The notes under the pieces were generated by a model. That model made no database searches. It was not told the DNA's origin and saw only the letters and a list, made by a program, of their open reading frames with translations. From the IMG/VR virus record IMGVR_UViG_3300042923_000601, positions 182,690 through 246,689 of that record: a DNA stretch of 64,000 nt. One strand, 5' to 3'. Numbering within the stretch: the stretch's first letter is position 1; each line of letters begins with the position of its first letter. Shown here piece after piece: positions 2,066 through 63,452 of the stretch. The position numbers and the translations under genes are program-made.

Positions 2066-3787
2066 ATGGCTATAAGCATTGTATATCAGGTTGGTGATAG
2101 TACCGTCGTTGGTACGATTGGTACAGCGGCGGGTATCCACACTTCTGCCGACATGACGTCTGTTGTTGTCGGGCAATTAGCCCGAGGTGACAAGGTTACC
2201 GTAACTGAAATTAAGAAAGACCCGATGTTGGCAAAAACCACATGGGGAAAGCATAGTAGAGGATGGACACCTATAACATCATCGGGGATTGTTGTTATGG
2301 TACCTATCACTACCAATCAAGCACCTGCAACTACACCTGTAACAACACCAACGGTGAATGAGACTCAATCTTTCACGGACGATGAAATCACTCAGACGAT
2401 CCGTACCATCAATAATGAGTACAAGATGACATCCGACGTTCAATTTCGGATGAAATCTGCACGATCGATTATGGGACTCCCCCATCAATTCATCAATACA
2501 GCTGATCCTCGTATCAAGAACTCTGGGTTTGGCCGCATGTTTACTGAGAATATTCTTATGGACATGCCGATTGTATCCATTATCCCAGGTGGGCCAAAGT
2601 TCCTTTCGGGTAAAGGAATCAGTAAGAAAGCCAGAGCTGACCTTGTCAACGCTGTCGTTAAAGGGCTTAACGCTCCTACCGAAATGGTCGGTAACATGAT
2701 TGATGACCTGACCGGTGGTAAGAATGCTAAGTATTACTCCTTTGAAACACAGTACTCGGAGTATATGATGTACGTTAACAACCTTACACGTATCATGTCG
2801 ATCTATCTTGGACTCCGAAAGAATGCGCTCTGGGGCGGAAATAAATCCTACGGAGACTTCAACTGGGAAACCAAGAAGACTGAGGTTGATGGTGCAACAT
2901 CTCTGATCGAATTGCTGGGTAGTCACGGTGCCGTTACTTTTTATTATGACAAATCAGGCACAGGAATGAACGAATCCATGAGTAACAGCACGGATAAGTC
3001 CATGCTTGACTCCGCGATGAATAACGCCTCGAACATGGCGAAAGAAGCCGAATTTATCTTCGGTGTCGGAGCCGGTAAGAGCGTAGACTTCATGAATGAG
3101 GCTTTGGCTGAGCAGAAGATCAACACTCTCTCGGAAAATTTGGCTGGGAATAGTAATATTTTCAGTACGTTATGGACAAATCTAAAAGCTGGGATGACCA
3201 CAGTTGTATCTGGTGCCAATATGCTTTTGCCTGAGATTTGGAGAGGTCATACATTCTCCCGTAACTACACGGTGGATATCAACCTCGTATCTCCATATGG
3301 TACACCTGAGGCATTTTATCTCAACATTGGCGTCCCACTATGCTTCCTACTGCCACTTGTTGCTCCTAGACAATTTGGTGCCAATGGCTTCTATTCTCCA
3401 TTCTTGGTACAGGCATTCTCAAACGGGATGTTCAACTGCTCTCTTGGCATTGTAGACTCCATGTCGATTAGCCGATTTGGTACAGGGGATTCGATCTCTA
3501 GAAAGGGATTGCCACTTGAGGTTAAGGTGAGTTTGACCTTTAAGGATATGTATGATGCAATGGGTGTCTCTACTGCTGCTAACATGACAGCCCTTATGAA
3601 TAATACGCCTTTGCTCGACTTTATGGCGAACTTATCCGCCGTTAACCTTAATGACCCTGACTTGGTTCGTAAAATGAGAATCTTCATTTCATCCAAAGCA
3701 GATACGATCACAGACCTACCGGGTAACGTTATCAACCGGATATTTGACGCTGCTCGTGACAATATAAATAATTCAATCACATACTAA
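2066..3787 (+). CDS. virion tail/baseplate structural protein with N-terminal SH3b-like domain
   Basis: GAGGTG RBS before ATG 2066; N-terminal SH3b-like segment (VVGQLARGDKVTV..WGK..GW), Thr/Pro linker, then a tail-tube/hub-like beta region; follows the tail lysin. Confidence 0.6.
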   Translation: MAISIVYQVGDSTVVGTIGTAAGIHTSADMTSVVVGQLARGDKVTVTEIKKDPMLAKTTWGKHSRGWTPITSSGIVVMVPITTNQAPATTPVTTPTVNETQSFTDDEITQTIRTINNEYKMTSDVQFRMKSARSIMGLPHQFINTADPRIKNSGFGRMFTENILMDMPIVSIIPGGPKFLSGKGISKKARADLVNAVVKGLNAPTEMVGNMIDDLTGGKNAKYYSFETQYSEYMMYVNNLTRIMSIYLGLRKNALWGGNKSYGDFNWETKKTEVDGATSLIELLGSHGAVTFYYDKSGTGMNESMSNSTDKSMLDSAMNNASNMAKEAEFIFGVGAGKSVDFMNEALAEQKINTLSENLAGNSNIFSTLWTNLKAGMTTVVSGANMLLPEIWRGHTFSRNYTVDINLVSPYGTPEAFYLNIGVPLCFLLPLVAPRQFGANGFYSPFLVQAFSNGMFNCSLGIVDSMSISRFGTGDSISRKGLPLEVKVSLTFKDMYDAMGVSTAANMTALMNNTPLLDFMANLSAVNLNDPDLVRKMRIFISSKADTITDLPGNVINRIFDAARDNINNSITY

Positions 3788-46121: not shown

Positions 46122-47459
46122 TTATCGAATGGTATTAAGTAGAAGATCAGTGTCATCGGCATGACCCGAAAGTCCTTTATTTACACGCATCGTTCTGTAC
46201 TTAATGAAATCTGGGTTCATTGCAATATCGAGAAGCGTATAATGCTTCTTCCGGTCAAAGGTAGCATCAAACACCTTGACAATAGCATCGAGGTCAGTGA
46301 GTACCTCAAACTTTTTCTTGGTCTTAACGGCTTCAACCAGCTCTGCCATGTCCTTATCGAGGCTGAGTTCGCCGATATACTTATATGTGCAGATGAAGGT
46401 GTCTCTGAGGGTTTTTAACTCCTTAGCAGTGACATACTTGAAGGTATGAGTGTTAATGTCGAAGTGAATCATGTTGTCAAAGCTATCTCTTGACGTGATG
46501 CCAATATCAATCTCACCGACAAGGTGCTTATTAACATCCCCGAAGAAGTGGAAGTATACATCATCAGGAGCCTCTTTGCCCATCATTTTCTGACCGGCAA
46601 TCTCCATATCATGCATCCACAGATCAAGAGGATCGCCCGCCTCGGTTAGCAATTGAGCACTCAGAGACGCGTCCATATCGGATTCATTAATCACAACCAG
46701 ACGCTTAGGCGTCTTTTCCTGCTGACGTTCGATGATTTCAAATAGGAACTTCAGGAAAGGGCCGAAGTCGTTATCTGTAATCTTGATGTAGTTGAAGTCT
46801 GTTGTTGCGATGATTGCCTTTTCCTTAGCCTGATCCTTACGAACATCAACGGCTTGGAACTTAGGATGCGTGTTCGGATTCTTCCCACCATGCTTGATCT
46901 CCACAACCGTATTGATAATGTCAATATAGAAGTCGGGAATATGCCAGTGGGTTTCTCCGTCTAGCTCATAATAGACTGTATATGGGCAGGGTGCGAAGAT
47001 CGTATCCACATCAAAGGAGAGGAAGTTATCCAAGAACTCCAAGAATCTTCTCTCATATGAACCGACATACGGTATTGACCGTTTGCCGTTACTCCACATA
47101 TACTCACCGGATATCTTCCGGTTTGCCATCATCTTCGTTTGATGGGCAGGGTCATTGAGAAGGTGGGGTACTCCGAATTTCTTAGTACTGCGCTCACGTG
47201 CCAGTTTAGCCATAGCCTCCCGGCACTTATCTTTGCCGCATAAAATCTTGGTCAACCCTGTTGCCTCGTCAAAGTCTGTTGGATCACTGCACACCCGGCA
47301 TCTGCCATGGGTATCACCCGCATGGTTTAGCGCGTAATAGTACTTGGCAGCCGACATGTGCTCTGGTATCTCATTAAAATGAGATGAATCCATGTGCTGC
47401 AAGACCTTATGTTTCTTATCGAAATACTTATTGCACACTGGGCATTTCATTTGATGCAC
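46122..47459 (-). CDS. C2H2 Zn-finger + PD-(D/E)xK (TnsA/head-completion-like) nuclease
   Basis: CPVC..H..H; CRVC; GSYERRF..IPDFYI..VEIK; INES/LTEA in the C-terminal part. Confidence 0.7.
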   Translation of the reverse strand: MHQMKCPVCNKYFDKKHKVLQHMDSSHFNEIPEHMSAAKYYYALNHAGDTHGRCRVCSDPTDFDEATGLTKILCGKDKCREAMAKLARERSTKKFGVPHLLNDPAHQTKMMANRKISGEYMWSNGKRSIPYVGSYERRFLEFLDNFLSFDVDTIFAPCPYTVYYELDGETHWHIPDFYIDIINTVVEIKHGGKNPNTHPKFQAVDVRKDQAKEKAIIATTDFNYIKITDNDFGPFLKFLFEIIERQQEKTPKRLVVINESDMDASLSAQLLTEAGDPLDLWMHDMEIAGQKMMGKEAPDDVYFHFFGDVNKHLVGEIDIGITSRDSFDNMIHFDINTHTFKYVTAKELKTLRDTFICTYKYIGELSLDKDMAELVEAVKTKKKFEVLTDLDAIVKVFDATFDRKKHYTLLDIAMNPDFIKYRTMRVNKGLSGHADDTDLLLNTIR

Positions 47460-47476
47460 TCCTCTCTAAGTACGTA

Positions 47477-47488
47477 TAATGTAATGTC
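47477..47488 (-). promoter_or_regulatory. late-type promoter motif GACA-N6-TA
   Basis: minus strand gaca-ttacat-ta; divergent AACA-N5-TA at 47514..47524 (+). Confidence 0.5.
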
Positions 47489-47559
47489 GAAAGATACCAG
47501 TTATAATATCAAAAACAATCAGTAAACCTTGTATGTAGAATGAAAAGGAGGTATGAATA

Positions 47560-47922
47560 ATGAGGGATGTCACCCTTGAAATCGACGATTTCTCCCGTAA
47601 CCGTATTATTACGGGTGCAACTGCAATGGCTCAGCAATTATACATTTTGCTAAATATGGACCCGGGTGATTGTGCTGATGATCCTGATAAGGGAATCGGT
47701 CTACGTCAATACAAAGTAGGGATACTTGAGGAAAACGGCCCCGCGTTACAAGAGGCTATTACTCGGCAGGTATCCCTGTATTGTGACTTCGAGACATCCG
47801 AGGTTCAGATCGGTAAACAAAACGGGGAATTGGTGATGGGTATCACATCACCATCGTTTGCAGAGATTCTTGTCTTCCAGACCAACAAGGATACCGTTTT
47901 AGCGTCTATTATCGACGGATAA
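47560..47922 (+). CDS. gp25/GPW-like baseplate (sheath initiator) protein
   Basis: LLNMDPGD..DPDKGIGL..Y pattern; 120 aa. Confidence 0.65.
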   Translation: MRDVTLEIDDFSRNRIITGATAMAQQLYILLNMDPGDCADDPDKGIGLRQYKVGILEENGPALQEAITRQVSLYCDFETSEVQIGKQNGELVMGITSPSFAEILVFQTNKDTVLASIIDG

Positions 47923-47989
47923 TTATTGATGTTAAAAAGTATGCCTGAAACAATCAAGAAATCGATTCTTATCCTTAGGAGGTTTTATC

Positions 47990-49657
47990 ATGGAGGGTCT
48001 CAACAACGACAACCAACAAGCTAAAACGGCAGAAGAACTGTCAAAACAACCAGCTGCTTCACGTGATCTTGACAGCATTATGCGTCAATATACAGACGAG
48101 CGGTTACCAGCAGCGGATGAAACTGGTGCTACCCGCCCAGCATCTGTGCTGCCACCTGAAATTGAAAATAGTGCAGACTTTAAAGCCCTTCCACCGGAAG
48201 AGCAGGCTCGGCTGCGTGCAGGCGGGTCATTCAACCCAATGGGTGCTGAGCTTGATGCGGTTGGAAGCCAGCAAGCTATGTTTGATATGATCAACGCTGC
48301 TCGCCTTCGCGACGGGAAAGAAATGCTTGAACCCGAAGTCGTTAAAGAAGGCGGGATTACCAAAGAGCTTCTCACCGAAGGACTTGCTGAACGCGATGAC
48401 CAGGCCGAAGAAGCCGATCGTGATCTTCAGGAACTGATCGGTGCTGTAACGAACGACCCGACGGCTGGGAGGGATCAAGACCCTGAAGCCGAAATGGAGC
48501 GTACACTCCGTGAATTTGAACGTCACCTTGAAGTGGGTACTCCGGTATACTTCAATGAGGATGATAAACCAACTAATCCAAAGAGCGCGGCTTACCCTGT
48601 TGTCGTGCGTCGGAATGAGGAGTATATTGATACCCTCAAAGACGCCCTTGACGCGAACGGCATCCAGTTCAAAACAAAGAAAAACAATGGCGCGCGCAAG
48701 GCGCTGCTGAAGGGCTTTACTCAGCGTAAAACCCATGTGTCTGTACCACTCGTGAATTCCGGCATCTATGTTACACTGGCCGGTGCGAACATCCCTGAAC
48801 TTATCCAAATGCAAAGTCTGGTGGAATCCGGTGGGGAAACAGTCACTGCTACTGAAATCCGCAAACTTGGTTTCGTTGTTAAACACCTGGTTGACAGCTC
48901 GGTCGGAAGTCATCTGTCCGTAAGCCAATTGACCAAACTGGTGTATTTCAAGGATCAGGATACGCTGTATTTCGATATGGTAGCAGCTACGTTCCCGGGC
49001 GAGAATGATTTCCCAATGACCTGTGAAAACGAAAAGTGCAAAGATTCGCTGATCCTCAAGGTATCCATCAATGACATGATCCTGAATGCTCATGAATTCC
49101 AAGAGGAAGCAAACTTTATCCTGTACGAAAACCAATCGGCTGATGACATCATCAAGAAGTCCGCTGTAAGCCGTGAAAAGCGGATTGTGCTGCCGAATGG
49201 CTTGATCCTTGGGGTGAAAAATCCTACGATCTATGACGTGCTGCACCTGAATACACTGATGGTTAAACTGCATGAGGGTGGTACTAAGCTTGACCAGTAC
49301 ACTAACATTCTCGGCTACCTTCAGTTCGTTAACTATATCGCCATCAAGGCAGAAGACGGGCCACACTATGAGAAGTTTACAGCTACAGCTGATACAGCTG
49401 ACGTTGCTGATCTTCTTGCAGCATGTGATACCGCTGATCTGGCGGCGCTGGATGAAGAAATCGAAGAATTCACGCCTACTAAGGGCTCGGTTCGTTACGG
49501 TTTCAAAGAATATACTTGCCCGAAATGCGGCCACGTGCACAAAGAACGTGCATGGAGCATGTCTGACATGCTTTTTACTTTAGCCAGCATGGAAGCAGCA
49601 AAGGAAAATATAGCGCGGCTGAACAAAAAGAAATTGAAAGACGCGACAACGAAGTAA
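47990..49657 (+). CDS. baseplate hub assembly / tail chaperone (T4 gp26/gp51-like) with acidic N-terminal region
   Basis: D.DTLYF..ATFP..C....C; PTIYD; C-terminal CPKCG. Confidence 0.6.
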   Translation: MEGLNNDNQQAKTAEELSKQPAASRDLDSIMRQYTDERLPAADETGATRPASVLPPEIENSADFKALPPEEQARLRAGGSFNPMGAELDAVGSQQAMFDMINAARLRDGKEMLEPEVVKEGGITKELLTEGLAERDDQAEEADRDLQELIGAVTNDPTAGRDQDPEAEMERTLREFERHLEVGTPVYFNEDDKPTNPKSAAYPVVVRRNEEYIDTLKDALDANGIQFKTKKNNGARKALLKGFTQRKTHVSVPLVNSGIYVTLAGANIPELIQMQSLVESGGETVTATEIRKLGFVVKHLVDSSVGSHLSVSQLTKLVYFKDQDTLYFDMVAATFPGENDFPMTCENEKCKDSLILKVSINDMILNAHEFQEEANFILYENQSADDIIKKSAVSREKRIVLPNGLILGVKNPTIYDVLHLNTLMVKLHEGGTKLDQYTNILGYLQFVNYIAIKAEDGPHYEKFTATADTADVADLLAACDTADLAALDEEIEEFTPTKGSVRYGFKEYTCPKCGHVHKERAWSMSDMLFTLASMEAAKENIARLNKKKLKDATTK

Positions 49658-49875
49658 AGCAAAAAATCGAAGATTATCGAGCGCTCCTAGACACTGCTCG
49701 GGAGATGCTGGCACCCATCATGAGCAGTGCTCAGATCGAAAGTTTACCGTATAAAGACCTCCTATATGAGCTTGAGCGTCGGCGTATCTTCCTTGAAAAG
49801 AATGAGGCGCTTGCTAAGAGTAAGGAGATGGAACGTCAATTGACAGGAAAGAGAAAGTCGCAGAGTAATCGCTAG
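49567..49875 (+). CDS. -1 frame extension ORF (gpT-like), probably reached by programmed frameshift
   Basis: 102 open codons in the -1 frame starting just before GCTTTTTA; no well-spaced RBS/start; MSSAQIESLPYKDL motif. Confidence 0.55.
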   Translation, partial: HAFYFSQHGSSKGKYSAAEQKEIERRDNEVKQKIEDYRALLDTAREMLAPIMSSAQIESLPYKDLLYELERRRIFLEKNEALAKSKEMERQLTGKRKSQSNR

Positions 49876-49907
49876 ATGCGACGAACGAGAGGTGGTGACA
49901 ACACGAT

Positions 49908-50261
49908 ATGGCAGCTAATAGAGCCGAGCTTTTAGTCGAACTCATCTGTCAGCATAATCAAGACACATCTGCGGATGACATGTTTAACCTTCTGGTCCCC
50001 CGAATGCATGGGCAGTTGTACTCACTATACTGCGTATTAGCAGACTCTACAGTGCTGAAGCAGTGTGTGTTCAAAACCCCTCTCGTTGAGGGGGATCAGA
50101 TTACGATCAACATCAGTCTAGATGCGAAGGCGGCAGCCAATTGTATCGATTATATCGGTAAAATGGGCCCGATTCTTAGGTATCTCAGACAATTGCATTA
50201 TAGTATTGAAGGTGTATTGACTTCCGATGGGATGTCCATTACCCTGAGCCCGGCATCATAA
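49908..50261 (+). CDS. hypothetical protein
   Basis: GAGGTGG RBS; terminator follows (50267..50294). Confidence 0.65.
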   Translation: MAANRAELLVELICQHNQDTSADDMFNLLVPRMHGQLYSLYCVLADSTVLKQCVFKTPLVEGDQITINISLDAKAAANCIDYIGKMGPILRYLRQLHYSIEGVLTSDGMSITLSPAS

Positions 50262-50303
50262 AAATAGCCCACTCCTATGACGGGAGTGGGTTTCTATTAT
50301 GGA

Positions 50304-50315
50304 AACAGCTACATA
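50304..50315 (+). promoter_or_regulatory. late-type promoter motif AACA-N6-TA
   Basis: aaca-gctaca-ta upstream of the RNAP subunit gene. Confidence 0.6.
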
Positions 50316-50342
50316 AATCGAAGTATAAGGAGTGTGACAACG

Positions 50343-51926
50343 ATGCAAATCCACCGTGCGAGGATTGACCATATTATTAAACTCAACGGTCTAAAAGAAG
50401 TTAAAGATTTGAATATGCTGGATAAAGGGATGCCTACGCCTGAGGGCCTATTCAGTTATGACATCTTTGGCTGGTCTCAGCATGACCGGCGGTCAATCCC
50501 AGCGTATATCGATCTCAAGGGTAAATTCCTTCACCCACTGGTTTATTCTAACCTGAAAGCTATTAACCGTAAGTTTGAATTTCTTGTGTCGGGTACAAAG
50601 TACTTCAGAGTGAACGAGGCTGGAGCACTTGTGGAAGACCCTAGCGGGGAAACCGGTCTTGACTTCCTTTACCGGGTATGGGATCAGATCAAATACAAAG
50701 ACACGCAGTCTATCTTTGGGTCTGAAAGAGTTAAGAATATCACCAACCAAGAGTATCCGGTATGGATTGATAAATGGCTCTTGCTCCCGGCGTTCTACCG
50801 TGACCTTAACTTCAACCAAGAAGGTCGCCCGTCCTATGATGAGATCAACGAGAAGTATATCAACATCATTCGTAAGGTAAACAGCATTAGCCAGCAGGAG
50901 CAGTATGGCTTCGTATCTAATTTAGCAAAGGCACAGGTTCAGCTGATCATCAATCAAATCCATGACGAGATTGTTGATGCTCATGTTAGAGCCAAACACG
51001 GTACTCTTAAGCGGTCGGTTATGAGTAAGAGTGTAACGGATGGCGCGCGTTTGGTTATCTCGGCCCCTAATATCAAGGGTGAACGATTCAACGATGTGCA
51101 GGTTCGCTATAATCAGATGGGCGTCCCACTGGCGGCAGTCTGCTCAATCTTCCACCCATTTGTAGTGTATGGGGTTCGGGAGTTCTTCCAGCAAGAATTT
51201 GTGACATCGGGTAAGTATGGTTACTGGGATGTAGAGTCGAAAAGTGTTAAATACACTCGATTAATCAACCCAGAGGCTCACTATTCGGATGAGTACATCA
51301 TCAAAATGATCAAGAAGTTCATCTACGGAACATCTACCCGTTACGAGACGATTGACGTGCCTCCGAATGAAGATGGGCTTAAATTAAAGGTGCACATGGA
51401 AGGTCGATTTGGAGACAGTTCTAGTGTGACCCGGTTCATGACCTGGACAGACGTTCTCTATCAGGTGTGCGAAGACATCCTATCGGAAAGACACATCTAT
51501 GCCACACGTTACCCGATCGAAGATCATTTCGGTATCGTGCCATCTAAAATGGCGATCTTAACAACCAAGGATACAACGCCTGCAATCATCGGGGATAAGA
51601 CGTACAAGTTCTACCCTGTCGTTAACCCAGACCAGCCAAGTGACAGAGACTTCATCGATACACTCAACTTGCCTTTGGCGTACTTGACTGGATACGGAGC
51701 TGACTTTGACGGGGATATGATGTCTATCATTGGGGTCTATACAGATGAGGCTAACGCAGACGCTCAGCGACATACGATGGATAAGAAGAATATCCTAACG
51801 AACACGTCCGAGAATATCCGGGTGGCACAGAGAGACTTTGTTCAGACGTATTATGCGCTGACGAAACGGCCTAATATGGACGATGCACCTAAATTCAACA
51901 ACCTGTCTAGAGTTGCTAACTTTTAA
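50343..51926 (+). CDS. phage multisubunit RNA polymerase beta'-like subunit (N-terminal/catalytic half; probably virion RNAP)
   Basis: EGLFSYDIFG; LLPAFYRD; ARLVISAP; TRYP; catalytic GADFDGD; AAGGAG RBS before ATG 50343; late motif upstream. Confidence 0.9.
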   Translation: MQIHRARIDHIIKLNGLKEVKDLNMLDKGMPTPEGLFSYDIFGWSQHDRRSIPAYIDLKGKFLHPLVYSNLKAINRKFEFLVSGTKYFRVNEAGALVEDPSGETGLDFLYRVWDQIKYKDTQSIFGSERVKNITNQEYPVWIDKWLLLPAFYRDLNFNQEGRPSYDEINEKYINIIRKVNSISQQEQYGFVSNLAKAQVQLIINQIHDEIVDAHVRAKHGTLKRSVMSKSVTDGARLVISAPNIKGERFNDVQVRYNQMGVPLAAVCSIFHPFVVYGVREFFQQEFVTSGKYGYWDVESKSVKYTRLINPEAHYSDEYIIKMIKKFIYGTSTRYETIDVPPNEDGLKLKVHMEGRFGDSSSVTRFMTWTDVLYQVCEDILSERHIYATRYPIEDHFGIVPSKMAILTTKDTTPAIIGDKTYKFYPVVNPDQPSDRDFIDTLNLPLAYLTGYGADFDGDMMSIIGVYTDEANADAQRHTMDKKNILTNTSENIRVAQRDFVQTYYALTKRPNMDDAPKFNNLSRVANF

Positions 51927-61946: not shown

Positions 61947-63452
61947 CTAGATCATCTCCGTAAAGCGGATAAACTCGTCTTCAACGAGCTTCTCGCTTAT
62001 TTCAATATCTTGTCCGAGCAATTCTGGTTTCTTATGATCGACATGTGACATAGGAGAATTGATCAAAGTCGCCAATGGGACCAAAATCAACTTCTCTGTC
62101 ACAAGCGACGCGGCATCGCTATACTGCTCCATGAGCCGTAAATAGCGAGGAGATAGCTTGATCTTATTGAGTGTCTTTGCTCCAATTTTACGAGAGCGAA
62201 TGGTTGTAGACGGCCCACCCGACAATATAGACGGGAGTAGCACGAACCCTTCGCGTTCGAGGATTTTCTTCATGATGATTACCAGTCGGAAGAATCCTCT
62301 TTTCTTAATGTATTTCTGGTTCTCTGTCCCGTCGAAGTCCTCTGCAAAGAACTGAAGAATCAGGTCTTTCTGAGTCGGGCTTAAGTCGCCGAGATGTTCT
62401 TCGTAAAAGTCAACGTGTTTGGATTTAATCTCCACGTTGTACTTTACGGCTAAACGTTTGATCTTGTTGGAACTGCCTTGGCTGGCGATCAGGATGTGTT
62501 GTTCATCGACCTTCGCAGCGTTCATCTCAAGCTGCTCCAGTCCAGACATCTTCTCGCCGTTTGATTTCTTACCACTTGTGTCAACGTAGTCGCGGACATC
62601 TTTACCGGTTGTAATTTCGTTCCCGATCATTTTCTTAATACCCGCGAGGTTGAGATTGATCATTTTCTGTGTGAAGACATACTTGAACATCAAATCCTGA
62701 ATAACCATCTTAGTTAAAACCGTGGTTAGCAGGATTGGAGTTGTCCCTTTGTGTTCGTTACGCTCCCACATTCTCCCGTCTTGATGGACAGAGCTGCTTA
62801 CCTGCTTTTCTGCAGTCGCATAAAGCTTGGCGTACATGTTTGTCCCGTCCTCGAATAGAGGGAAAAGTGAATAGAAGCAGTTGTAGAGATATTCCTTGAG
62901 TGACTTGTCACGCACCATATCCGCACGCGCCATATAATAATGGGAAACAATGGGAATGGCGATTTTCAGTGCTGTGCTAATTGCCATGAGAATCTTCCCA
63001 TGACGGTTAGTGAATTGTTGAGGATTGTCCTTGTATCGTTCGTTGTTCGTGGACGATTCCAAGTTAACCCGGTACTGCTCATCAACCAATGTTTTGATCT
63101 TCTTGACCATTGAATCCGTGAAGAGGGTGTTGACCAGATCATCACGGAAGCTATTGTAAGTATAAGTCATGTTATTCAGATCAATCAACGTCTTCATATT
63201 GAGGTACGCTGTGAGAAGCTCTTTGTCTTCATCATAGTACATCATGAGGAAATTGATCGTGTCGCAAATCAAGTTTGCTTTCGTATAAAATGATGATTTT
63301 ATGATATGAAATACATTTAAGTTGGGTCGGCTAATGCCAAATACCCTGTCAAAGTCACATACTATAATCCCCTTTGACCCTGCGTGGAATATCCGAAATT
63401 TCGGAGGCCGATCAGGGTTTTTTCGCTCAATACGTGCAATATCCGCCCTCAT
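61947..63452 (-). CDS. sigma-like promoter-specificity subunit of non-virion RNAP (AR9 gp226 / phiKZ gp68-like)
   Basis: 501 aa; motifs FDRVFG, KSSFY, KIAIPI, YAKLY, D.RMW, SGLEQLEMN..D, F.LLPSILS match my recollection of AR9 gp226; early motif upstream. Confidence 0.75.
   Translation of the reverse strand: MRADIARIERKNPDRPPKFRIFHAGSKGIIVCDFDRVFGISRPNLNVFHIIKSSFYTKANLICDTINFLMMYYDEDKELLTAYLNMKTLIDLNNMTYTYNSFRDDLVNTLFTDSMVKKIKTLVDEQYRVNLESSTNNERYKDNPQQFTNRHGKILMAISTALKIAIPIVSHYYMARADMVRDKSLKEYLYNCFYSLFPLFEDGTNMYAKLYATAEKQVSSSVHQDGRMWERNEHKGTTPILLTTVLTKMVIQDLMFKYVFTQKMINLNLAGIKKMIGNEITTGKDVRDYVDTSGKKSNGEKMSGLEQLEMNAAKVDEQHILIASQGSSNKIKRLAVKYNVEIKSKHVDFYEEHLGDLSPTQKDLILQFFAEDFDGTENQKYIKKRGFFRLVIIMKKILEREGFVLLPSILSGGPSTTIRSRKIGAKTLNKIKLSPRYLRLMEQYSDAASLVTEKLILVPLATLINSPMSHVDHKKPELLGQDIEISEKLVEDEFIRFTEMI

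Follow-up and report, generated by a model that had tools for sequence, protein, structure and literature searches.

A conserved, predicted -1 frameshift in a jumbo-phage gene related to baseplate-hub assembly factors

We found that a jumbo-phage gene related to the T4 baseplate-hub assembly factors, a link that holds at fold level only, most likely makes a second, longer protein when the ribosome slips back one base on a short run of T's. The gene lies in a 64,000-nt stretch of IMG/VR record IMGVR_UViG_3300042923_000601 (positions 182,690 to 246,689), hereafter the window. The same unannotated arrangement is present in phiKZ, AR9, SPN3US, Goslar and every other relative examined, with one aberrant contig variant as the only exception. 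Frameshifting is an established strategy in phage tail genes; what would be new is its extension to a gene family and a phage group where it has not been described.

Results

[quoted passage not shown]

A first-pass annotation had proposed, from the sequence alone, that the -1 frame opens after a TGA just before G CTT TTT A, runs to a TAG and fills the gap before the next gene, that C AAA AAG is a second slippery candidate, and that the internal ATGs lack a well-spaced ribosome-binding site. This observation is correct: every coordinate it gave was confirmed (Table 1), and the peptide it quoted from the product is encoded there. No ATG, GTG or TTG occurs in the -1 frame before 49705. A GGGAG stretch directly abuts ATG 49705 and lies 15 nt upstream of ATG 49720, so that the Shine-Dalgarno spacing is poor (0 or 15 nt). 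No alternative genetic code was used.

Table 1. Coordinates of the frameshift locus and its neighbours in the window.
Feature	Position	Strand	Description
Upstream neighbour	47560..47922	+	gp25-like baseplate wedge subunit
0-frame gene (P0001)	47990..49657	+	555 aa; N-terminal half disordered; conserved C-terminal domain (about residues 245-530) with a four-Cys zinc ribbon (C345, C350, C510, C513); fold resembles T4-type baseplate hub assembly proteins
-1-frame TGA	49564..49566		Stop before the open -1 frame
-1 open frame	49567..49872		102 codons
Overlap	49567..49657	+	Both frames open; dual-coding for 27 codons from the T-run to the 0-frame stop
Proposed shift site	49570..49577	+	G CTT TTT A, with CTT and TTT as 0-frame codons (CTT TTT A at 49571-49577); tRNA-Phe on TTT (49574-49576) can re-pair perfectly one base back on TTT (49573-49575)
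-1 frame extension	49576..49875	+	99 codons plus TAG; joined after F529 gives a predicted 628-aa product (529 + 99)
Second candidate site	49624..49630	+	C AAA AAG; present but not conserved, probably not the shift site
0-frame stop	49655..49657		TAA
Small ORF	49705..49875	+	56 aa from the first ATG of the -1 frame, as a gene caller would report; most likely only the tail of the extension
-1-frame stop	49873..49875		TAG
Downstream neighbour	49908..50261	+	Conserved 117-aa gene of unknown function; own ATG with a GAGAGGTGGTG Shine-Dalgarno-like stretch upstream

We next asked whether the open frame could be expected by chance. The -1 frame of the upstream coding region carries 0.135 stops per codon (959 in 7085 codons over 17 loci), or one every 7.4 codons, and in 9 of 17 loci the nearest stop lies only 3 codons before the T-run. 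Across 13 distinct metagenomic relatives, however, no stop occurs in the 356 overlap codons after the T-run, where about 48 would be expected. Contigs from independent soil and silage runs cover the T-run without any indel, showing that the arrangement is not an assembly error.

The T-run and the -1 frame are conserved in related phages

Conservation of the slippery site and of the -1 ORF in related phages had been named in advance as a way to check the proposal, and we examined 13 distinct metagenomic relatives and 13 cultured jumbo phages (BpSp, AR9, S6, phiR1-37, Machias, phiKZ gp77/gp76.4, PhiPA3, Goslar, RSL2, SPN3US, Ea35-70, PCH45 and pir03). All carry the downstream small ORF in the -1 frame, and in all of them that frame is open back to a T-run at the same protein motif (L/F-F-T). 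In the 13 distinct metagenomic junctions the frame is open for 100-110 codons from the T-run. The exception is one contig (L012, identical to L017), which has a TAG in the -1 frame 13 codons after the T-run. Relatives came only from alignment-based scans and the protein databases; blastn of the region against phage records and a single-protein scan of IMG/VR returned nothing.

The T-run is also invariant at synonymous positions. NTT TTT is present in all 13 distinct metagenomic relatives, with Leu encoded by CTT in 12 of 12 cases against a 32% background and Phe by TTT in 14 of 14 against 47%. The heptamer of the window is not a canonical X XXY YYZ site because the CTT tRNA cannot re-pair on GCT, and only the T TTT tetramer allows re-pairing. 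Relatives carry canonical T TTT TTT, TTC or TTG at the same motif, and most of the cultured phages have T TTT TTY. C AAA AAG, by contrast, is not conserved: the closely compared relative L002 (65% amino acid identity to the window, no indels) has C GAA AAG, and the other relatives have unrelated sequence there.

Comparison of the window with L002 revealed that synonymous changes lie in the 0 frame up to 49603 and in the -1 frame from 49633, inside the overlap and upstream of any ATG. Between 49633 and 49704 the -1 frame has 10 synonymous and 3 non-synonymous changes, and every one of these changes is non-synonymous in the 0 frame. In the first 30 nt after the T-run the changes are synonymous in the 0 frame rather than the -1 frame, which fits dual coding but also a shift site somewhat further downstream. 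Furthermore, the -1 ORFs of phiKZ and PhiPA3 align from the first codon after the T-run (36% identity, E 8e-26), including 85 residues upstream of the annotated Met of phiKZ gp76.4.

We also looked for stimulatory elements. No conserved downstream RNA structure or upstream Shine-Dalgarno-like stimulator was found; the 84 nt downstream in the window fold no better than shuffles (z = 0.1), and hairpins occur only in some metagenomic lineages (L006, L015 and L008). Such an element is not obligatory, lambda G/GT lacking one, and these observations do not settle whether one acts here.

The two predicted products and their genomic context

The gene product matches phrog_18873 and phrog_4585, both of unknown function, and its zinc-ribbon cysteines are invariant. 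A structural model (C-terminal domain pLDDT 75-87) gave BFVD hits named baseplate hub assembly protein, subunit or chaperone (E 1e-9 to 3e-4, TM by target 0.5-0.6), and the nearest Atlas clusters partly carry PF12322, the T4_baseplate Pfam family of gp26 and gp51. PF12322 itself does not match above its cut-off; in the genome search the control also stayed silent, so sensitivity is poor. Alignment to the T4 gp26 profile by hhalign gave a probability of 42% (E 2.6e-4) over 83 columns that include the CPxC zinc-ribbon motif, a weak match to the gp26 C-terminus that speaks neither clearly for nor clearly against similarity to gp26 itself. Pfam searches of both products gave no usable hit (DUF7307, at E 0.083, was disregarded), and PDB searches by sequence profile and by fold gave nothing.

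The extension is confidently modelled (pLDDT 84.5). Its first 13 residues have no assigned structure (residues 1-8 have pLDDT below 50), and two long helices follow (14-45 and 59-97), ending in a basic tail. An alignment of the extensions has 9 invariant columns. The 628-aa protein was not assembled or folded as one chain, because no reference exists for it, and its two parts were modelled separately. Similarity between the window's extension and those of AR9 or phiKZ is not significant (E 0.045 and 0.4), although both alignments fall on the same motif, and the extension shows no similarity to gp51, including its C-terminal part.

The upstream neighbour is gp25-like (phrog_120, E 0.0016), and the syntenic gene is annotated as baseplate wedge subunit in AR9 and Machias and as putative baseplate protein in BpSp. 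Syntenic counterparts of the downstream neighbour, of 93-126 aa, occur in the relatives. The neighbours of the locus are an endonuclease, the gp25-like gene, the 117-aa ORF and an RNA polymerase beta subunit. PHROG scans of 17 further ORFs of the window (36211-63452), not every ORF, found no tube or tape-measure gene within roughly 14 kb on either side. In the BpSp virion proteome Gp287 was detected, whereas Gp286, the homologue, and Gp285 were not listed; as absence from virions is known for BpSp only, linkage to gp25 together with a non-virion role is only partly documented.

Discussion

Together, these data suggest that ribosomes translating this gp26-like gene occasionally slip back one base on CTT TTT A, most likely because the peptidyl-tRNA-Phe on TTT re-pairs with the overlapping TTT. 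Ribosomes that slip would leave the 26-residue 0-frame C-terminal tail, modelled as part of a helix, and read the -1 frame to its TAG, giving two proteins with the same first 529 residues: a major 555-aa form and a minor 628-aa form that carries a short linker and a two-helix C-terminal domain with a basic tail. By analogy with lambda G/GT and P2 E/E+E', we propose that the fixed ratio of the two forms serves baseplate-hub or tail assembly, where the shared body would do the gp26/gp51-type job and the extension would tether it to another component. Our analysis shows the two frames, the conserved T-run, purifying selection on the -1 frame upstream of any start codon and conservation of the architecture across AR9-like and phiKZ-like jumbo phages; that the shift is translational, how efficient it is and its role in assembly are inferences. 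Translation of the junction has not been shown directly: there is no direct evidence of the junction peptide or of two protein species, no RNA or proteome data exist for this phage and no RNA run contained the stretch. We nevertheless consider the model likely. The interpretation in the first-pass annotation, a -1 frameshift extending a gp26/gp51-like gene as in tail-assembly genes, is thus supported, with the refinements that only its first candidate site is conserved, that the gp26/gp51 link rests on fold and a weak profile match, and that the comparison with G/GT is one of mechanism and not membership.

We considered other explanations, all of which appear less likely. Insertion of one extra U on the T-run by the phage or host RNA polymerase in a fraction of transcripts would fuse the two frames and give exactly the same 628-aa protein. 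Many relatives have 7-8 T's, a length at which polymerases slip, and these phages transcribe late genes with an unusual multisubunit RNA polymerase. However, the window, L002 and most of its clade, AR9, S6 and phiR1-37 have only 5 T's and Machias has 4 (TTTTC), shorter than known slippage-prone runs, and what is conserved is the reading register (a TTY codon preceded by T), as expected for tRNA re-pairing, rather than run length; we thus regard transcriptional slippage as unlikely. Independent translation of the small ORF, from ATG 49705 or 49720 or by termination-reinitiation after the TAA, is about equally unlikely. In its favour, both ATGs are conserved in L002, gene callers and GenBank annotators treat the small ORF as a gene in all relatives, one metagenomic locus (L005, 3001-3219) carries a free-standing extra copy of the domain with its own ATG, and the L012 variant has a stop between the T-run and the conserved domain. 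Yet the -1 frame is under purifying selection upstream of the ATGs and is kept open from the T-run in 13 of 14 distinct metagenomic junction variants and all 13 cultured genomes, the T-run is constrained at synonymous positions, conserved motifs such as YRxLLD lie upstream of the first ATG in several loci, and the position of the first ATG varies freely, with database relatives called as 52-103-aa proteins from whichever ATG is available.

A real shift downstream of the T-run, for example on A AAG (49627-49630) or elsewhere between 49604 and 49633, would fit the change of synonymous-site phase in the window/L002 pair, and A AAG is a shift-prone tetramer that is kept in L002. This site is absent from the other 11 relatives, the -1 frame is protected from stops right from the T-run, and the -1 peptide directly after it (F-Y-F/V-x-P) is conserved, making this reading very unlikely. 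Although homopolymer runs are classic sites of sequencing error, a miscounted run or a recently broken gene is effectively refuted, because the same offset is seen in independent runs, in 13 other metagenomic lineages and in 13 finished phage genomes with T-runs of 4 to 8.

These results bear first on annotation: the 3' part of one gene is currently annotated as a separate small hypothetical protein in hundreds of jumbo-phage genomes (for example phiKZ gp76.4, AR9 gp229, SPN3US gp40 and Goslar gp82), and the region between the T-run and the annotated start is not annotated at all. Homologues of phiKZ gp77 occur in 219 phage records. Literature searches on frameshifting in connection with gp26, the baseplate hub, jumbo phages, AR9, PBS1, phiR1-37, phiKZ gp77 and SPN3US found no description of this shift, and neither the phiKZ structural atlas nor the BpSp proteome paper mentions it. 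Two forms of one assembly factor in a fixed ratio would give a concrete handle on how giant baseplates and hubs are assembled, and the idea is directly testable in model phages that already have proteomics and genetics. A broader reading, which the data do not rule out but which we regard as doubtful, is that all phiKZ-like (nucleus-forming) and AR9-like jumbo phages make their tail or hub assembly chaperone as a frameshift pair from a gp26/gp51-family gene. These proteins would then be the missing counterpart of lambda G/GT in large myophages, the helical extension would be the module that holds the tape-measure or hub protein, and the separate T4 genes 26 and 51 would be an unlinked version of the same two-protein scheme.

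Comparison with known systems

The closest genes are phiKZ gp77 plus gp76.4 and AR9 gp230 plus gp229, annotated as separate hypothetical proteins. The gene is homologous (phrog_4585 E 1e-197 in phiKZ; BpSp gp286, hhalign 98%), the T-run falls at the same motif and the -1 ORF has the same layout, but phiKZ-type extensions are longer (154-181 codons) and use canonical heptamers. T4 gp26 and gp51 share fold-level similarity through proteins annotated as such, and the gene is adjacent to gene 25. The protein studied here is much longer, with a disordered N-terminal half, and T4 gene 26 has no -1 extension, having instead an internal in-frame start, 26'.

In the T7 gene 10A/10B frameshift (G GTT TTC), as proposed here, a -1 shift occurs on a T-run where only the Phe tRNA re-pairs well and the preceding tRNA cannot, yielding a C-terminally extended minor product. 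In T7 the shift affects a capsid protein and its efficiency depends on distal 3' sequence, whereas here it would affect an assembly-factor gene and no stimulator was identified. The other close parallel is the tail assembly chaperone frameshift of lambda G/GT and P2 E/E+E' (Xu, Hendrix and Duda 2004, cited in PMC9024508). The gene family and fold differ, as this is a gp26/gp51-like zinc-ribbon protein of 390-660 aa and not a TAC of about 100-140 aa, the gene lies next to the gp25-like wedge gene and not between tube and tape-measure genes, and the slip site in the window is non-canonical. In those systems, however, and as proposed here, a -1 shift near the 3' end of a non-structural tail-morphogenesis gene gives a short major form and a C-terminally extended minor form. 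Lambda requires no RNA stimulator, one metagenomic relative (L010) carries T TTT TTG, the heptamer of P2, and the arrangement is conserved across very divergent phages with little sequence conservation.

The -1 frame at the 3' end of the 555-aa gene is open and lacks an early start codon

The window is the last 64 kb of a 246,689-bp IMG/VR virus record, and it belongs to a jumbo phage with multisubunit RNA polymerase genes; ARAGORN found no tRNA genes in it. The 555-aa gene ends at a TAA, and relative to this gene the -1 frame has a TGA shortly before the gene's 3' end and is then open for 102 codons to a TAG. This frame contains no ATG, GTG or TTG upstream of its first ATG, and a GGGAG stretch lies directly against that ATG and 15 nt before the following one. 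The first-pass annotation had proposed two slippery sites, G CTT TTT A and C AAA AAG, and we found both at the positions and in the register it had given. Every element of that observation is therefore confirmed.

Coordinates of the features at the proposed frameshift locus and in relatives
Sequence	Coordinates	Feature
Window	46122-50261	Stretch with gene order compared with cultured phages
Window	47990-49657	0-frame gene, 555 aa
Window	49496-49763	268-nt stretch without substitutions, among those examined, in a silage variant
Window	49564-49566	TGA in the -1 frame
Window	49570-49577	G CTT TTT A (T-run)
Window	49573-49575	TTT on which tRNA-Phe can re-pair
Window	49574-49576	0-frame TTT codon
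Window	49624-49630	C AAA AAG
Window	49655-49657	TAA, 0-frame stop
Window	49705	First ATG of the -1 frame
Window	49720	Following ATG
Window	49873-49875	TAG, -1-frame stop
Window	50277-51926	phrog_2986, RNA polymerase gene
Window	61947-63452	phrog_25005, RNA polymerase gene
L005 (metagenomic contig)	3001-3219	Free-standing second copy of the extension domain
L012 (metagenomic contig)	about 2306-2323	18-nt scrambled patch
L026 (T4)	3803-4429	Gene 26

The coding phase switches inside the overlap

A word-based protein search found one relative of the 555-aa protein, which is 65% identical and is encoded on a 7-kb Logan contig (L002). The two loci align without indels from 49380 to 49875. Up to 49566, differences fall on 0-frame third positions (11 of 15 in 49500-49566), while from 49607 on they fall on -1-frame third positions. 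The last synonymous 0-frame change is at 49601-49603 and the first synonymous -1-frame change is at 49633-49635. Between 49633 and 49704 (i.e., upstream of any start codon), the -1 frame has 10 synonymous and 3 non-synonymous changes, and every one of these changes is non-synonymous in the 0 frame. The -1 frame therefore appears to be translated before the first ATG, although translation of the junction has not been shown directly.

The T-run and the -1 ORF are conserved in metagenomic relatives

Conservation of the slippery site and of the -1 ORF in related phages had been put forward in advance as a test of the frameshift. An exhaustive phmmer search with the -1 ORF found seven short database proteins of 52-103 aa, each of which had been called from whichever ATG was available. 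Their contigs, together with alignment-based scans of IMG/VR and JGI metagenomes, gave 13 distinct junctions. In all of them the small ORF is in the -1 frame of the big gene, overlaps it by 23-33 codons, and is open for 100-110 codons from one conserved point, the T-run inside the protein motif L/I-F-T. In the upstream coding sequence the -1 frame carries 959 stops in 7085 codons (0.135 per codon), and the nearest stop lies only three codons before the T-run in 9 of 17 loci. After the T-run, by contrast, there is no stop in the 356 overlap codons of the 13 distinct junctions, where about 48 would be expected. At the T-run the Leu codon is CTT in 12 of 12 Leu cases (the lineage of contigs L008 and L016 has ATT), and Phe is always TTT, against background usage in the same genes of 32% for CTT and 47% for TTT. 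The second proposed site, C AAA AAG, is not conserved. The -1 peptide aligns over its whole length with 9 invariant columns, starting Y-F/V-x-P directly after the shift point.

One contig is an exception. L012 (= L017; IMGVR_UViG_3300025154_000210) is nearly identical to L016 and L008 but carries an 18-nt scrambled patch just after the T-run, which creates a TAG in the -1 frame 13 codons after the T-run. We take it for a variant or an assembly defect, but it counts as evidence against the frameshift. In contig L005 (JGI Ga0618282_000011, a 257.7-kb contig), the -1 ORF is directly followed by a second, free-standing copy of the extension domain, which is 72 aa long, has its own ATG and lies in another frame. 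It is thus a tandem partial duplication, and it suggests that the domain can also act in trans.

Cultured jumbo phages share the layout

The only tblastn hit of the 555-aa protein in the phage collection was gp286 of Bacillus phage vB_BpuM-BpSp. Profile comparison confirmed the homology (98%, E 4e-14) and aligned the proteins up to the M-x-x-L-F motif. In BpSp the DNA reads CTT TTT TTT ACG, and the -1 frame runs from there through the annotated 46-aa gp285. Relatives of gp286 have the same layout, with CTT TTT or CTT TTC, in AR9 (gp230/gp229), Staphylococcus S6, Machias and Yersinia phiR1-37 (g241/g242). Gene order is also conserved between the window and AR9, S6, Machias and BpSp, with a zinc-finger endonuclease (minus strand), a gp25-like wedge gene, the gp26-like gene with its -1 ORF, and then a gene of about 100 aa. 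The next gene is GroEL in the cultured Firmicute phages but an RNA polymerase beta subunit in the window. These relatives belong to the group named in the literature as uracil-DNA (dU) phages (AR9, PBS1, phiR1-37), and S6 also has dU-DNA.

The second PHROG family hit by the 555-aa protein (phrog_4585) identifies phiKZ gp77 (E 1e-197). The 3' end of gp77 reads ACT TTT TTT ACT, and its -1 frame is open for about 170 codons through the unannotated gap into PHIKZ076.4. We sampled PhiPA3, Goslar, RSL2, SPN3US, Ea35-70, PCH45 and vB_pir03 from 219 records with a gp77 homologue, and all have the small downstream gene in the -1 frame, open back to a T TTT TTY run. The -1 ORFs of phiKZ and PhiPA3 align from the very first codon after the T-run (36% identity, E 8e-26), including 85 residues upstream of the annotated Met, and the parent proteins are about as similar (39%). 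In total, 13 of 13 cultured genomes share the architecture, as do 13 of 14 distinct metagenomic junction variants.

The frame offset is not an artefact

Contigs from an independent soil study and from silage metagenomes cover the T-run with no inserted or deleted letter. One is identical over 49519-49714, while another carries 45 substitutions over 1194 nt. In this variant, from a silage metagenome, none of the substitutions examined lies in a 268-nt stretch that covers the overlap and the start of the extension; not all differences were covered, so this is tentative, but it would fit suppressed synonymous change in a dual-coding region. The same frame offset recurs in finished genomes with T-runs of 4 to 8.

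The T-run is the likely site of ribosomal slippage

In the 0 frame the codons are CTT TTT ACT. A tRNA-Phe on TTT can re-pair perfectly one base back, while the tRNA-Leu on CTT cannot re-pair on GCT. In the window's clade, and in AR9, S6 and phiR1-37, the site is thus a one-tRNA site (T TTT), whereas most phiKZ-type phages, BpSp and metagenomic contig L010 have two-tRNA heptamers (T TTT TTT, TTC or TTG). No conserved downstream structure was found, and the window's downstream 84 nt fold no better than shuffles (z = 0.1), although some metagenomic lineages (L006, L015, L008, L010) do have a significant hairpin. No conserved upstream Shine-Dalgarno-like element was seen when the sequences were inspected by eye. 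A low, constitutive efficiency, as for lambda G/GT, is therefore the most likely regime.

Transcriptional insertion of one U would give the same protein and cannot be excluded, above all for the phages with 7-8 T's, but the 4-5-T sites and the conserved register argue for tRNA slippage. We consider it very likely that a trans-frame fusion protein is made, and likely, with somewhat less confidence, that it is made by ribosomal -1 slippage at the T-run. The comparative evidence thus supports the first-pass interpretation of a -1 frameshift extending the gene, at the first of its two proposed sites. The frames, the T-run and their conservation are read directly from the sequences, while the translational nature of the shift, its efficiency and any role of its product are inferences.

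The predicted 0-frame product resembles baseplate hub assembly proteins at the fold level

The predicted products are 555 aa and 628 aa (529 + 99). The model of the 0-frame protein has a disordered N-terminal half and a confident C-terminal domain (pLDDT 75-87), which has a four-Cys zinc ribbon and ends in a helix (524-554) that begins at the shift site. The extension is modelled with pLDDT 84.5 as two long helices after a flexible linker. A Foldseek search against viral models returned phiR1-37, BpSp and phiKZ-type homologues first, followed by proteins annotated as T4-like baseplate hub assembly protein, subunit or chaperone (E 1e-9 to 3e-4). ESM Atlas neighbours partly carry PF12322, and an hhalign comparison to T4 gp26 is weak (42%) but covers the CPxC motif. 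Pfam itself gave nothing, with poor sensitivity in the genome search, where the control also stayed silent, and no solved structure matched. T4 gp26 ends in KEFFELL right after its CPxC motif, which resembles the L/F-F motif at which the jumbo-phage genes shift; T4 has no -1 extension there and instead has an internal in-frame start (26').

The gene follows a gp25-like wedge gene, as gene 26 adjoins gene 25 in T4. In BpSp the wedge protein Gp287 is in the virion proteome, whereas Gp286 and Gp285 are not listed (PMC4870245), which fits an assembly factor. That the fusion serves hub or tail assembly in the G/GT manner is tentative at best.

Comparison with known frameshift systems

We found no mention of a frameshift in gp77, gp26-like or baseplate-hub-assembly genes of jumbo phages in the full-text literature, although subscription literature was not covered and prior description cannot be excluded. 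The strategy itself is familiar, while the gene family is new, as is the very wide, unannotated distribution, which includes several model phages. The proposed shift works like the tail-assembly-chaperone frameshift of lambda G/GT and P2 E/E+E', and at the level of the site it works like T7 10A/10B. PHROG scans of 17 further ORFs of the window (36211-63452), within roughly 14 kb on either side and not covering every ORF, found no tube or tape-measure gene flanking the locus, and the gene is not a member of the TAC families by sequence, fold or position.
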